Assembly: GCA_004764695.1 (NCBI GenBank)
Contig: SMSO01000014.1
Span: 2,413,648-2,477,647, forward strand
Direction of reading: 5' to 3'
Origin: Schizochytrium sp. TIO01
Lineage: Eukaryota; Protista; Bigyra: Labyrinthulomycetes
Length of the DNA: 64,000 bases
A model generated the notes under the pieces. It saw only the letters and a program-made list of their open reading frames with translations. It ran no database searches and had not been told where the DNA came from. A program made the position numbers and the translations under genes. Shown piece after piece: positions 46,361 to 52,096 of this stretch. The number at the start of each line of letters is the position of its first letter. Position 1 is the stretch's first letter.

Positions 46361-48935
46361 TCACTTCTGTCGTTCGCCAAGATATCTCAATTCGAGTCTG
46401 GAATTCAACCTTCAGAAGTAGAGCATTTCTTTCCACGTAAACACAAAATACCTTCCTATGCACTACTATCTATCTATTGCTTACTTTCCTGTACTTATGA
46501 ACCTAATAATATGAAAATTCCTGGCACGCCAAACTTGACGAATCACTATTGGGATATCGTAATTGTTCATTCAACAGTTGCGGAGAATCTTCGTGAAGCC
46601 CCGACTTCCCGAGATGTTAGGATTCCTTGAAGCAGGAAGCATGTTGTCTACCTAACTATTGATACTGCCTACTACCAATTCCATAAAAGCAAGGCCGGGT
46701 ATAGATGGAGCGATGGTATTTAGCCGAGGAATAGAGAAGGTACCTCATGCGTTCACAGATTAAGTCATCTCTGGAACAAGTTTATCTATGGTAGGAGCCT
46801 TTTGAAAAGGCGTCCGCCCCTACTATGAGATGCACACTTTAGGCCTATCTGCTTAAAAAAATATTTAAACAGTTACTAATCAATTGTTTATGCTGGCAGT
46901 CTTAGCGAGCAAGAATTTTGAAATCAGGCCGAACATCCCCAAAGACGAGCGCTTATCTCAGGGGTAACACACACCTCGTTTATTTTCTCTCAAACAGTGT
47001 ACCATTAATTTAAAATGCTGTCTTTAAGGTTCATTTTGTAGTTTATTGTTTATTGTTTCCTACTGCTCGCTGACTTTGTCGAGGTCCACTGAGGTACTTT
47101 GGCTCATTTCAATGCGTTGGCTTACTGCTATAATCTGCATCGGTAGCCAGTTAACACTATTTTGGATGTCGGTTCTCATCTCTTAAAGTCCCCATCTTAA
47201 CGTCCAGGATTAGAAACTTTAGCTTTTGTTCTTGATCAGATATTTTCTCCCTTCACATATTTCGCTATATTTTTTTCGGGCTAGTCTTCTGACCCTCCGA
47301 ATATCACTCTAGCAAAGTTTCTCTGTCTTTATCTTCTCTCTTTGCATAGTTTTCTTTACCTTCCACGGAGCAGCATTGCCTGGGCCACCGCCATGTACAC
47401 TGTTTTTTTGTTTTTATATTGAGCGTTGCAAAATCATTGATTTATGTGCACAGTTCCAGCATTTCTTTTAGTACCTTAACCAAATTTATTTCGTACAGTG
47501 AGACAAATACTCTCAAGTGACGTCAGCTCCTTTTGCTTGTTTTGAAGAATCACATCGTCATTTGATCTCGCTAAATTTTGGAAAGCCGTTGACTGCCCAT
47601 GGGTTCTTTTTGCACAAATTGGTGCTCTGTGGATGCCGAACATGAGTAATATGCTACTGGCTGTATTTCTTCTCATATGTTTAAGGGTTGATTTTCCCAA
47701 GGCACTGCTTTTGACAGGCAACGCAATTAGAGATATGCTATTAATCGCTGCGTTTCTCATTTGAGCGAGAGCGTAGTTACTGTGATCTGATTGGTTACGA
47801 TCCTCCAAACCTGTGGTAAAGAACTCTTTAAATTGCCATGTTTGCTACGCCTCCTAGTCTAAGAAATTTAAAATATCCTGTTGCGTTCAATTCTGCAGCA
47901 TCTTGACATCCTCTGTGTCCTCTTTTTAATGACTATTTCGCAACAAGTCACCATGGGTCTATCCTAGCAGAATGAGATAGCGTTTTGAGGTGGAATTAGA
48001 TCGGCAGCACTATATCGGGGTTGCATTCCACGCCATGTGAATTCACTAATGCGGTGGAATTTACGTGTCAATCTGCTCAGGATAAGTCTCAGGGTGAGAT
48101 ACAGTTCCGCAGCAGCAATCTTAGTGCTATGGCTCATATTCGAGGTTGTTTCATTACGCTAACAAGCACGGGAAACCAGCCCGTGGTTGCATTGTTGTTC
48201 GAGGTAATTACGGCAAGCCAGAGTAGTCGAGTTTTGACATTTCAATATCACTATTATTATATTCTTTCAACCTATCCCTGAAACAGCTTCTTGTAGTCTT
48301 GAGTTAATATCTAATACTCACCATAAATTACATTCTTGTTGTTCATGTAACGGGCTGGGTTTTCAGTTTTTTTGGTTATACATTCAACATTGAAAAGAGT
48401 GGCATAACAGTGTAATTCTTTGTTTAAATCCTCAGTACTCAAACTTAGATATCTTAAGCGGACAATATGTTGAATTGTTTGAAGAGTTGCCGTCTGATAA
48501 GAGTAGAATCAAGAACACAACCTGCTCATGACCCCCCCACCCCACAGTCTCACTCATCAGAGTCTATTTCCCTAACTTAACTCGAACCGTATTCTCATTA
48601 AACTCTGAATTGTGATTGAGCCTTTTGGCTTGGATTTCTACATTTCTTCTCAAGTCAAAAGGCTGTGTGACCATCCTCTGGCTAGTAAGAGTGGAAACTC
48701 CCATTAAATGAATTGGTGCCATTTTGGAAACTAGAATAATTTATTAGAGCAAATCGAAATAAGTCACACCCAGTAGTCAGAGTCAGAAGCGGCTTCTAGC
48801 AACCTTTTTATACGTAAAAACTTAAGTTAAAGCATTCATGCCATCCTGTAAAGCTACTCTCATGAGTTAAAGATAACTCCTATCTTGAGAAGAAACTCGA
48901 GGCAAAATAATTACTCGTTACCTCCCGATAAGATC

Positions 48936-49100
48936 CTATTGAATTACTCTCGAATTACAATCTGCAAAACTTGCATTTCCTATGGTGACAGAGTGCGGGG
49001 CTAAGCCCCAATCTCGAGTTTAAAAAAAAACTAACCCATGACTCAAAAACAATTCTCAAACCACGTCTTTAAATCGGTAGAACGAAAGGGCGCCTCTGGC
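48936..49100 (-). ncRNA. Candidate Fanzor omega-RNA (copy A): scaffold plus flank-derived guide
   Basis: Lies directly 3' of the RuvC-III codons. Shares hairpins GGGGC-TTA-GCCCC and TGCAA-GTT-TTGCA with the other copies. Expression and boundaries are inferred. Confidence 0.45.
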
Positions 49101-49400
49101 GGCATGGACATCACGATCGACTACAGGTTTGCATTTTTGGGGGGGCATTTGAAAACCTTGGATGTTCTGAGCTTGTCGTGGATTGTACATATCCTCTGCA
49201 TGGTTTCGAAGTATCCCCAAATGCAACCACGTAGGCGGTCGTGATATCCACGCCGGCAGAGGCATCCTTTTCCGCTGTCGATTCAAAGACGCAATTTTAG
49301 AATTGTTTTTGAGTCGCGGGTTAGTTTTTTTAAAAACTCAAATTGGGCCTTAGCCCCTCACTCTGTCACCATATGGAAAATGCAAGTTTAGCAAATTGTA
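48956..49400. mobile_element. Non-autonomous fold-back (MITE-like) element made of two inverted Fanzor 3' ends
   Basis: 48956-49145 is an imperfect inverted repeat of 49215-49400 (~80% identity by eye), with TA at both outer ends. Left arm plus loop (minus strand) reads DTSKPC..IHDKLRTSKVFKCP..KCKPVVDRDVHAARGAL with frameshifts. Right arm (plus strand) reads KCNHVGGRDIHAGRGIL. Homologous to 57101-57355. Confidence 0.85.
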
Positions 49401-49420
49401 TTGGTTAAATTCTAAATGAC
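49260..49420 (+). ncRNA. Candidate Fanzor omega-RNA (copy B): scaffold plus flank-derived guide
   Basis: Directly 3' of RDIHAGRGIL. Hairpins GGGC-CTTA-GCCC and TGC-AAGTTTA-GCA. Expression and boundaries are inferred. Confidence 0.45.
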
Positions 49421-49723
49421 AACTTCTGTCAAAAAGATAGAATATAAAGAGTATGACGAAGCAGTAGGTACTACTACTTATTAAGCACGCTTTATATTGT
49501 TATGGAGGTACTCTAGCTAGATATAGAATATTAAGTAGATATCTATCTAGAGTACTGACTACGTCGCTTTCATTACTTTCATTCAAAGTTGAAAGAGAAA
49601 CGTGAGTAAATGATTGTCTTAATTCACCGCGCAAAGAAAACCTCAAGTTGACAGACTTCCCAAGGTGACGGGCCTTAATACCAGTTCAAAAAGGCGTATC
49701 GAAGTGCCAAGGAAAGTATCAGC

Positions 49724-50287
49724 ATGGACGCGAAAGGAGAGTCCTTCAAAGTGAAAGTAGAGCGTCTTCTTTTGCCCTTCGTTTCGAGATGGTGGTTTCC
49801 TTGGGCAGTTGGTTGCCTCAGTGCTCTCAATAGTTTTGTTGTTATCTTAAGTGCACCTTTAGTGGTACTGTACATCTCTGCTGTACTGGCCCGCCCTGAG
49901 AGAAGATTAATTGCAGCTTTCGCCAACGCTGCAGGCGTAACTATTGGAGCAGCTGTGCTGGTCTTTGCTGGTGCTTCATCCGAGGCATTCCCTACATTTG
50001 ATTCAGACCAATTCGAGCGTACCCGAACCCTTGTACAAGATTATGGAGTTGTGGGATGCGCACTCTATTCATGCTTGCCGATAATCTTACATCCTATAAT
50101 CTTCTTTGGGCTTGTCTTTCAGCTGGATCCGTTGCTTTTGCTCTTGGCAATTTTCGTCGGCCGCGCCGTCAAATATATTATTATGGGTCAGCTTGCTCTG
50201 TCAGGAAGTAGCTACTTGCAATTATTTGGCACTACAGCAGTAAGCGCGGCTAAGCAACAAGATGATAAATTCAAAAAGATGGAGTAA
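49724..50287 (+). CDS. Small polytopic membrane protein, DedA/VTT (YqaA-like) family candidate
   Basis: Hydrophobic 187-aa ORF with ANAAGVTIGA, YGVVG...CLP and IFVGRAVKY patterns typical of DedA/SNARE-associated proteins. Confidence 0.65.
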   Translation: MDAKGESFKVKVERLLLPFVSRWWFPWAVGCLSALNSFVVILSAPLVVLYISAVLARPERRLIAAFANAAGVTIGAAVLVFAGASSEAFPTFDSDQFERTRTLVQDYGVVGCALYSCLPIILHPIIFFGLVFQLDPLLLLLAIFVGRAVKYIIMGQLALSGSSYLQLFGTTAVSAAKQQDDKFKKME

Positions 50288-50482
50288 GACTAAAATTAAA
50301 CGAGCTACACGGAAACAAAATAGAACCACGGTTTTGCTGAAAATGAGCAACATGATTGCTATAGCCCATTTTTATCTAAAGTTCTAAAACATTAACTTAT
50401 TCAGCCTCTCATTTAGTTTTTTCATAGCCATAGCTTTAGACCTATCAATGGCTGCGCATGGAATGACAAGTGGATGCAACGG

Positions 50483-52096
50483 CTACATAGGCAATCTGAG
50501 AAGATCAAGGAGAAATGATACAGAAGCCTTTGTATCAAGCTGATCTCCTAAACGTGGTACATTGTCACCTCCAAAAATCTCGGAGTAAAGCCTCACAGCT
50601 TTACCAGCATATTCCTGTGCATCTTGAGAGTAATCAAAGTAGCTGTAAAGTTTTGCCAACATTGCATAATGTATAGCAAGAGCAGGGGAAAGCGAAGGTA
50701 GACGCACTTCTAGCTCCTTTGTGATCAAAGCCCCACAAGCAAGTGCATGTTCGAACTTACCATTTTCTATGTCCATTTGCATCCGCCTTTGAGCCAGAAT
50801 TATGAAAGCTGAGGTTGCACCATAACCTGCTGCAGTGAATAGTGCAAGAGTGCTTGGTCTCGCGTCGGGATCTCGGAAAAGTGCAATGAGCTCTTCGAAT
50901 CCATTCTTTGCATCAATATGGTTTTCTTCTTCAAAATGGAATTTATAGCTCTCACAGAGCGTAGAGTTCATTTCTTCTTTTCCTCGAGAGGCAGCTGCTT
51001 GGGCACCTTCGCACAAACGTTTTCGAAGTAAATCTTGGCTATTGGTTTCATTGGACGGAGACATCACAGCTACGTATACCTTCTCCCTATATGTTGCGAA
51101 CTGCATAGTTTCTAAGCCACTTGACTTGCATCGGGAGCCATCTGAGATACTTAAGAAATTGAGGGATGCATCTTTTGCATTTGAGTTTAGGTTGAAGCTT
51201 GAACCTTCCAAATCACTGGTGGCGATGTTGTAGTGCCATTTTAGTTGAATTTCTTTCTGAAGCTCACTTCCAAGTTGGTCAACATATGATATTGTAATCT
51301 CATCACCTACAGCAATCTCTTTTGTCGCTACAAGGATGATACGGGGTCTGCCTTGCTTGCATAGCTTGAATATTTGCACTGTATTAGGCAAATCTGCATG
51401 GTTCACAAGACGCCCCCGATAGCCAAACAAGGCAATTCCAATAGGTTGCTGATCCCCATTGACAATATTATGTGCATTAGCGCGAAGTTTGGCTAGGTGA
51501 CGCGCGAGTTGCATAATCTTCGCTGAATCTACCGAGTCCCCCCAAGGATCTTCTCCAGCTGCTAATTTTGCACAAGCAAGATACGAGTGTGCGCCTCTGG
51601 CCATAAGTATCAGTTCTTGTTTCTCATCATCACTTAAGCACTCTAAATGATCTGGCATCTTATCAAAGATCTTCCTCAGAGAAGGGTCTTTGGCGACCCG
51701 CCATTCCAGACGACAGCACAACCTAACAAGAGTCGGGGGTAGTTTGGGACCCATTCGTGCACACCAATGCTGAAGAGCAATTGCCTCTTCCCTGAAACCC
51801 AGCTTCCAGTCTTGTGCTTGCTCTTGGCGTCCTAAATATCGTGCGAGTTTTGACTTGGAGCATCGCAGAAGCTTCTCACCACACAAAAGCGTGAGATGAC
51901 ATCTTTTAGACAGTTGATTTGGTAAGGGAATTGATACCAGAGCTTCTTCCTCGAGCACAATTTGCCCTCTCTTAAAACCTCGACTTGCGACAAGCCCAAG
52001 GCCTTTGGCGCCTCCGAAGTTGCAAACCTCCAGGTCAGAATCGTTGCCTTGATTAGACACTGGCGTTGGCTTTCTGTTGACGCATAAATCAGTCAT
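50483..52096 (-). CDS. SMYD-like SET-domain protein with degenerate MYND finger and TPR-like C-terminus
   Basis: KGLGLVASRGFKRGQIVLEEEALV, LRANAHNI, GIALF, LVNHADLPN, EIAVGDEITISYVD. Confidence 0.82.
   Translation of the reverse strand: MTDLCVNRKPTPVSNQGNDSDLEVCNFGGAKGLGLVASRGFKRGQIVLEEEALVSIPLPNQLSKRCHLTLLCGEKLLRCSKSKLARYLGRQEQAQDWKLGFREEAIALQHWCARMGPKLPPTLVRLCCRLEWRVAKDPSLRKIFDKMPDHLECLSDDEKQELILMARGAHSYLACAKLAAGEDPWGDSVDSAKIMQLARHLAKLRANAHNIVNGDQQPIGIALFGYRGRLVNHADLPNTVQIFKLCKQGRPRIILVATKEIAVGDEITISYVDQLGSELQKEIQLKWHYNIATSDLEGSSFNLNSNAKDASLNFLSISDGSRCKSSGLETMQFATYREKVYVAVMSPSNETNSQDLLRKRLCEGAQAAASRGKEEMNSTLCESYKFHFEEENHIDAKNGFEELIALFRDPDARPSTLALFTAAGYGATSAFIILAQRRMQMDIENGKFEHALACGALITKELEVRLPSLSPALAIHYAMLAKLYSYFDYSQDAQEYAGKAVRLYSEIFGGDNVPRLGDQLDTKASVSFLLDLLRLPM

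Follow-up and report, generated by a model that had tools for sequence, protein, structure and literature searches.

The window analysed here is a 64,000-nt stretch of DNA from Schizochytrium sp. TIO01. At positions 48930–49418, it contains two 5'-truncated 3' ends of a TnpB/Fanzor transposon that face outward. An inverted-repeat search of the window returns three pairs at this locus, at 48956–48983/49373–49400 (86% complementary), 48976–49029/49325–49378 (81% complementary) and 49016–49136/49219–49339 (79% complementary). The pairs are colinear and jointly cover 48956–49136 and 49219–49400, with their inner ends 82 nt apart. A 26-nt arm motif occurs exactly twice in the window, once in each arm, against an expectation of 0. 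The predicted fold of the whole fold-back as a single RNA strand is one long, imperfect hairpin, at -248.6 kcal/mol (z = -17.9). The features of the locus are as follows.

48930–49212, minus strand: left copy, a 5'-truncated relic equivalent to nt ~1930–2199 of the intact element (alignment to intact and relic copies)
48930–49055, minus strand: non-coding tail of the left copy (alignment to intact and relic copies)
48994–49011, minus strand: small conserved tail hairpin of the left arm, GGGGC-UUA-GCCCC in RNA sense, -9.5 kcal/mol
49056–49058, minus strand: stop codon of the left copy (alignment to intact and relic copies)
49059–49212, minus strand: coding remnant of the left copy, zinc ribbon and RuvC-III (DRDVHAARG; BLASTP, E 4e-9)
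49137–49218, minus strand: the "loop", which is the first half of the left copy's zinc ribbon and is unpaired in the shorter right copy
49199–49218, no strand assigned: junction, readable in part as either copy (local alignments, nine family members)
49199–49418, plus strand: right copy, a shorter 5'-truncated relic equivalent to nt ~2005–2199 of the intact element
49216–49296, plus strand: coding remnant of the right copy, PKCNHVGGRDIHAGRG... (alignment to intact and relic copies)
49297–49299, plus strand: position of the family stop codon in the right copy, now TTA (alignment)
~49344–49360: right-arm counterpart of the small tail hairpin, with one mismatch, -6.2 kcal/mol

The left-arm translation (FQMPPQKCKPVVDRDVHAARG...) aligns with the last 32 residues of the C-terminus of the intact genomic Fanzor (BLASTP, E 4e-9), and the right-arm translation (PKCNHVGGRDIHAGRGIL...) with the last 27 (E 3e-11). 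Neither of the two arm ORFs has a significant Pfam match. Since shortness or decay accounts for this, family identity is set by alignment to intact copies. Each arm contains the last zinc-ribbon and RuvC-III codons, followed by the conserved non-coding tail up to the family right end. The left arm keeps the RuvC-III motif as DRDVHAARG. In the right arm the motif reads GRDIHAGRG, the first D of DRD is gone and the family stop codon is gone as well. Family matches that cover positions 1–257 of the fold-back query continue through the loop stretch, 49137–49218. The anatomy given in the original prediction is thereby confirmed in most respects: the inverted arms (three colinear pairs, 79–86% complementary), the two outward Fanzor/TnpB 3' ends with a conserved tail on each, the zinc-ribbon end and RuvC-III encoded by both arms, and a loop that derives from zinc-ribbon coding DNA further upstream in the left copy.

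The outer limits of the element differ from those first proposed. A multiple alignment of the arms, 8 relic copies and 4 intact ones shows that the right arm reaches the family terminus at ~49418 (...TTCTAAATG, compared to the family ...TTCTAAGTG). The left arm reaches ~48930 with a small indel, and its terminus is less clear than that of the right arm. The letters TA are present at the outer ends of the inverted arms as described, but the element does not end there. They are part of a conserved ...TTGTA... motif that lies 18–26 nt inside the true termini. The flanks outside both right ends have no inverted similarity to each other (score 18, compared to a shuffled mean of 22 and maximum of 35). 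The TA is not a TSD, as it is internal, the flanks share nothing and intact copies have no TSD. A Tc1/mariner-like TA duplication was rejected because the TA is internal and the flanks of intact copies carry no duplication. Helitron-like ends were ruled out by the terminal sequences.

A genome search with PF07282 returns 43 matches, approximately 17 of which lie within open frames of 615–682 aa. From ten intact loci and their flanks, the element emerges with sharp boundaries and a length of ~2.2 kb, and its copies are 94–99% identical. The left end reads (A)ACAAAAA(A/C)CGT... and the right end ...GCAAATTTTGTAGTTTAAAATCTAAGAG. Neither TIR nor TSD is found in the ten intact copies compared at both ends. 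The long frame ends in ...KCNHVADRDVHAARGILLRYLSKDMI and is followed by a non-coding tail of ~105 nt. Its protein has above-threshold matches to PF07282 (2.4e-13) and PF12323 (IS605-OrfB helix-turn-helix) and a weak one to PF01385. Among solved structures, its best relative is the TnpB-like protein L79 of mimivirus (9b0l, E 2e-18), which we take to be the mimivirus Fanzor2 studied by Jiang et al. A match to PF00239 (resolvase-type serine recombinase, tnpA) lies inside the intact elements at nt 110–808, in a different frame than the Fanzor. As the PF00239 tnpA and the Fanzor2-like nuclease share the same elements, the family is, judged by its gene content, an IS607-type transposon with a tnpA and a predicted Fanzor2-like nuclease. 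The representative copy is listed below.

L044:1461–3659 (G000:C32:2840760–2842958): example of the intact element, with ~16 further loci

The IS607-type family in this genome is young and apparently autonomous, with at least 17 copies that carry open Fanzor frames. The Fanzor frame is open across the whole tnpA gene in a different frame (nt 102–2090), so its start is putative. One young subtype (L048, L050 and L053, mutually 98–98.6% identical) contains an extra ~295 bp located ~190 bp from the left end, which brings the element to ~2.49 kb. In L048, read as the reverse complement, this segment is at 1341–1635. The family agrees with published accounts of Fanzor2 in IS607-like elements that lack TIRs and TSDs (PMC3627910; PMC6188088). 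Mimivirus IS607 copies carry a conserved structured guide RNA that extends from the 3' region of the ORF to the right end (PMC10530073). According to the IS607 literature (PMC6188088), movement needs both a left and a right end.

Many other copies in the genome are decayed. In an all-against-all comparison, 26 loci form a repeat family with homology over 900–950 bp from a common end, and two longer copies of ~1.9 kb (L030 and L031) have a further ~1 kb. The relics in this comparison are full of stops and frameshifts and are ~69% identical among themselves. Dozens of family relics are present at 72–78% identity. One relic C-terminal piece (L030:4995–5408) matches PF07282 (Cas12f1-like/TnpB zinc-ribbon) above the curated cut-off (E 1.1e-10), and three further relic pieces have no significant Pfam match. 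At least 15 relics share one deletion, in which nt ~45–511 are joined to nt ~1703–2197 (lost nt ~512–1706). The resulting derivative of ~950 bp keeps both ends and the guide-scaffold region, whereas its tnpA lacks the 3' part and its nuclease gene is mostly gone. Its breakpoints are common to the relics, which indicates that the ORF-less derivative was itself amplified. On this evidence, most of the old relics are copies of one amplified ~950-bp derivative. Its loci are listed below.

57101 to ~58010 of the window (L007): example of the ~950-bp derivative, with at least 14 other loci
L003, L006, L010–L016, L018, L019, L022, L026, L027 and L029: other loci of the ~950-bp derivative

At L005 (G000:C4:724463–727684), two old relics lie in the same orientation ~1 kb apart. 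Approximately 100 bp from the right end of the first relic is a 98-bp piece that shares 98% identity with the young element's right end. Together, the piece and the two relics form a small insertion cluster.

In local alignments with nine family members, the 5' homology limit of the left copy falls at 49206–49218, mostly at 49212. The limit of the right copy falls at 49191–49219, mostly at 49199. Approximately 14 nt at the join therefore fit either copy and constitute an imperfect microhomology. This stretch can be read both ways because the zinc-ribbon coding region of the family contains two short, similar segments that are mutually inverted. A join at imperfect microhomology is characteristic of DNA repair or template switching and not of a transposon end made by a recombinase.

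The whole 445-nt query has 79 matches in its own 64-Mb genome when the best 40 of 164 candidates are scored. Among these candidates, the other loci are 71–79% identical to the query and each matches one arm alone. In this pattern, query positions 1 to ~257 match one strand and ~244/260–445 match the opposite strand at the same coordinates, because the query is palindromic and the target is single-copy. Only the locus itself aligns over 1–445 among the best 40 of 164 candidates. A 151-nt junction probe finds no second locus with the same junction among the best 40 of 108 candidates. Nearly all of its matches elsewhere cover either 1–73 or 74/80–151, which is one side of the junction. Three exceptions (1–79, 63–147 and 60–135) pass the junction by 4–16 nt, within or just past the microhomology. 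A copy with the same junction would rank among the best-scoring candidates, so a hidden one is unlikely, and a very diverged second fold-back could escape the scoring of the best 40. No left end or other family homology is found within the fold-back or in ~1.5 kb on each side. The proposed mobile unit with a repeated junction is not recovered: the junction is matched by its own locus only among the best-scored candidates.

A maximum-likelihood tree was built from the ~200 nt that 25 relics, 8 intact copies and both arms have in common. It places the arms as sisters (ultrafast bootstrap 97, SH-aLRT 94; the bootstrap did not fully converge and these values are rough). The stem that leads to the arms has a length of 0.057 and their terminal branches are 0.10 and 0.16, compared to a median of 0.13 for the other copies. 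The arms share several derived states that are absent from every other aligned copy and are visible in the multiple alignment. They are 69–75% identical to the active family. The sister relationship means either that both arms come from one source copy or that sequence was exchanged between them, and gene conversion between the arms could imitate it. Judged by these branch lengths, the fold-back event is probably old and the arms have since changed as fast as other dead copies. The ~79% complementarity of the arms is accounted for by their summed divergence. A comparison of the tree branches gives no sign that pairing is maintained or that compensatory change has taken place between the arms.

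The fold-back is very probably a single, old and decayed rearrangement of two dead IS607-type 3' ends, and a non-functional DNA relic. It encodes no protein. It cannot move, since transposition in this family involves a left end together with a right end. Under the most likely origin, to which we give about even confidence, two sister copies would have come to lie head to head. The second was probably derived from the first, or both may have come from one local source. The centre of the resulting long, unstable inverted repeat would then have been lost by a microhomology-mediated deletion that took both left ends and most of both bodies. The joined remnants are the last ~280 nt of one copy and the last ~205 nt of the other, connected 5' end to 5' end with their right ends outward, and both arms have decayed neutrally after the event. 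This centre-deletion model accounts for intact right ends on both arms next to unrelated flanks. The main alternative origin, in which snap-back or template switching made an inverted copy within the limits of the element, is rather unlikely. A snap-back duplication of the chromosome is disfavoured, as the inverted similarity ends with the two right ends and is absent from the flanks. Nested insertion of one copy inside the other was also rejected, as the sequence past the right arm's right end has no homology to the family.

A functional reading with a slim chance of being correct is that read-through transcription of the locus gives a dsRNA that is diced into small RNAs, and that these silence the active IS607/Fanzor family. 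The predicted hairpin is very stable at -248.6 kcal/mol, an active family worth silencing is present, and many independent DNA data sets still contain the locus. In fourteen DNA-like runs, which come from at least 6 studies and carry several organism labels, 73–98% of the words sampled from 48600–49800 are present, which indicates that the locus is widespread among sequenced isolates. The identity runs argue against silencing. The longest exact identity is 17 nt between the two arms, 17 nt between the left arm and the active element and 14 nt between the right arm and the active element, and runs of 17 nt or less are too short for perfect 21–24-nt targeting. The arms are only 79% complementary and drift at the neutral rate with no compensatory upkeep of pairing.

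The RNA-like data point the same way. In the contigs of three RNA-like runs, the unique outer boundaries have a depth of 0–5, compared to 23–60 for the neighbouring gene. Low-depth contigs over the right arm occur in two of the RNA-like runs. One covers 49204–49396 (depth 3.7, 0 mismatches). Another extends from 49209 to 49459 and crosses 49418 (252 nt, depth 2.1, 5 differences); contigs of this kind show neither strand nor transcript ends and may miss low-level or small RNAs. No listed RNA-like contig reaches across the centre of the fold-back, and its unique parts are at trace depth. High apparent depth over the arms was rejected as expression, since it consists of 45–55-nt pieces with 3–6 mismatches that belong to other family copies at the 90% threshold. 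The hairpin silencer of the original prediction therefore finds no backing, given that no listed RNA-like contig spans the centre and that identity runs do not exceed 17 nt. In these contig-level data, the locus essentially combines a unique junction with a lack of transcription, the outcome that was named in advance as speaking against a functional element; what remains is the trace depth at the boundaries.

The gene on the right (ORF 49724–50287) is predicted to encode a multi-pass membrane protein and has a depth of 23–60 in all three RNA-like runs. Its contigs start at 49482–49740 (window positions 49480–50600), which places the fold-back 60–320 bp upstream of an expressed gene. In RNA-like run X15, which has a different organism label, a low-depth contig contains a 7-nt insertion, TCAACAG, behind window position 48955. 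The insertion falls within the terminal portion of the left arm and represents a polymorphism of the relic between strains or species.

In a broader version of a regulatory role, the fold-back is kept because read-through from the promoter of a neighbour makes it a source of imperfect hairpin RNA, or of two outward guide-like RNAs, that damp or misdirect the active family. If true, it would be a host- or element-derived regulator made of guide-RNA scaffolds. We consider this very improbable.

The conserved tail was compared between intact copies and the two arms. The intact tail is predicted to fold into four hairpins (z -3.2 and -4.4), and the folds of the arm tails are at the level of shuffled sequence (z -0.4 and -1.2). 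A long stem of 13 bp has a folding energy of -16.5 to -19.0 kcal/mol in intact copies and -2.9 to -13.9 kcal/mol in relics. In the fold-back it is degraded in both arms, to -5.6 kcal/mol in the left and -2.0 kcal/mol in the right. The two small tail hairpins persist in both arms. RNAalifold on 13 tails recovers the small hairpins only. It misses the long stem because of indels in the loop, and the stem was accordingly scored sequence by sequence. The Rfam search (E <= 1) has no match for either the fold-back locus or the intact element, so the tail belongs to no curated RNA family.

In the young elements, the two subtypes differ in the 13-bp stem (L044:3570–3600 compared to L048:1420–1452, minus strand) by paired changes that keep the helix. 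The stem arms are GGGCUAGU/ACUAGCUC in the one and GGGUUAGU/ACUAAUCC in the other. The hairpin next to this stem also differs between the subtypes, yet it still folds. These compensatory stem changes support a putatively functional structured RNA in the living elements.

These results bear on the suggestion that the fold-back is an ORF-less double guide-RNA cassette, with outward arm RNAs that take their guides from the flanks and are loaded into an intact Fanzor made elsewhere. At least 17 intact Fanzor frames are available in the genome, and the Fanzor2/TnpB guide RNA overlaps the 3' end of the ORF and extends as far as the right end (PMC10530073). The small tail hairpins kept in both arms and the low-depth RNA-like contigs over the right arm also fit. 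The suggestion is nevertheless hard to credit, because the dominant 13-bp stem is degraded and the arm folds are at the shuffled level. The arms are no closer than 69–75% identical to the active family, and they bear no sign of constraint. The 20-nt flanks, as candidate guides, match only themselves in the genome at 2 or fewer mismatches, and the sole 2-mismatch match of the flank 20-mers equals that of a reversed-pattern control. With no other genomic match, such guides would have nothing to cut but the occupied site. Both boundaries between right end and flank have a coverage of 0–5, compared to 23–60 for the neighbouring gene. The double guide cassette is therefore not substantiated by stem, flanks or boundary depth. 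Across the structure, flank-match and contig-level RNA tests, there is no evidence that the fold-back supplies guide RNA or silencing RNA.

Equally strained is a MITE-like fold-back in which the right-end scaffolds serve as TIRs and the family transposase moves the whole. Its inverted arms do carry transposon ends outward, the family did produce an amplified non-autonomous derivative, and the intact tnpA copies could act in trans. The ends of IS607-type elements are asymmetric, however, and the amplified derivative has a left and a right end, whereas a left end is missing from the fold-back. The best-scored candidates include no second copy of the junction, the arms differ by ~21%, and the TA is internal to an element that has no TSD. 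The MITE originally envisaged thus fails on its unique junction among these candidates, on the missing TSD and on the missing left end.

A false head-to-head join of two different relics during assembly has next to no probability. In one independent DNA run, the listed contigs stop inside the fold-back (48557–49174 and 49241–50600) and none of them bridges the centre, as such an artefact would allow. In the same run, however, the left flank is contiguous with the left arm and the right arm with the right flank. The fourteen DNA-like runs contain most of the sampled words, and two contigs enter the right arm, one from 49204 with 0 differences and one from 49209 with 5. Assemblers make no joins over imperfect inverted homology of ~14 nt, and sister arms are not expected from a random mis-join of two relics.

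As a decayed rearrangement of two dead 3' ends, the fold-back alone matters little: it is another rearranged piece of a decayed transposon. It is of use as a negative example: a striking inverted pair of guide-RNA scaffolds need not be an architecture. Its genomic context, a young IS607-type family together with an older, amplified ORF-less derivative, is of more interest. The young family and the ~950-bp derivative form a good natural system in which to ask which sequences are needed for movement in a eukaryote.

Rearranged inverted transposon pairs and palindromes with a deleted centre are known from the maize "double Ds" and from the centre-break resolution of long inverted repeats. The fold-back likewise has inverted copies, an asymmetric centre and a microhomology join. 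The known inverted pairs are cut-and-paste elements with TIRs, some of them mobile or chromosome-breaking, whereas the fold-back has no sign of activity.

The IS607 elements with Fanzor2 (for example mimivirus ApmFNuc/L79; Bao & Jurka 2013, PMC3627910; Jiang et al. 2023, PMC10530073) are the closest counterpart of the parent family, which likewise has tnpA followed by TnpB/Fanzor and no TSD or TIR. The parent family also has a structured tail of ~105 nt from the 3' end of the ORF to the right end. The fold-back differs from these elements in that it consists of 3' fragments of ~205 and ~280 nt, without tnpA, a complete nuclease or a left end. Among ORF-less TnpB/Fanzor derivatives, the same family's ~950-bp element (at least 15 copies) keeps the 3' scaffold as the arms do. 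That derivative is multi-copy, with a left end and a right end in each copy, whereas the fold-back, with its two right ends, is single-copy among the best-scored candidates.
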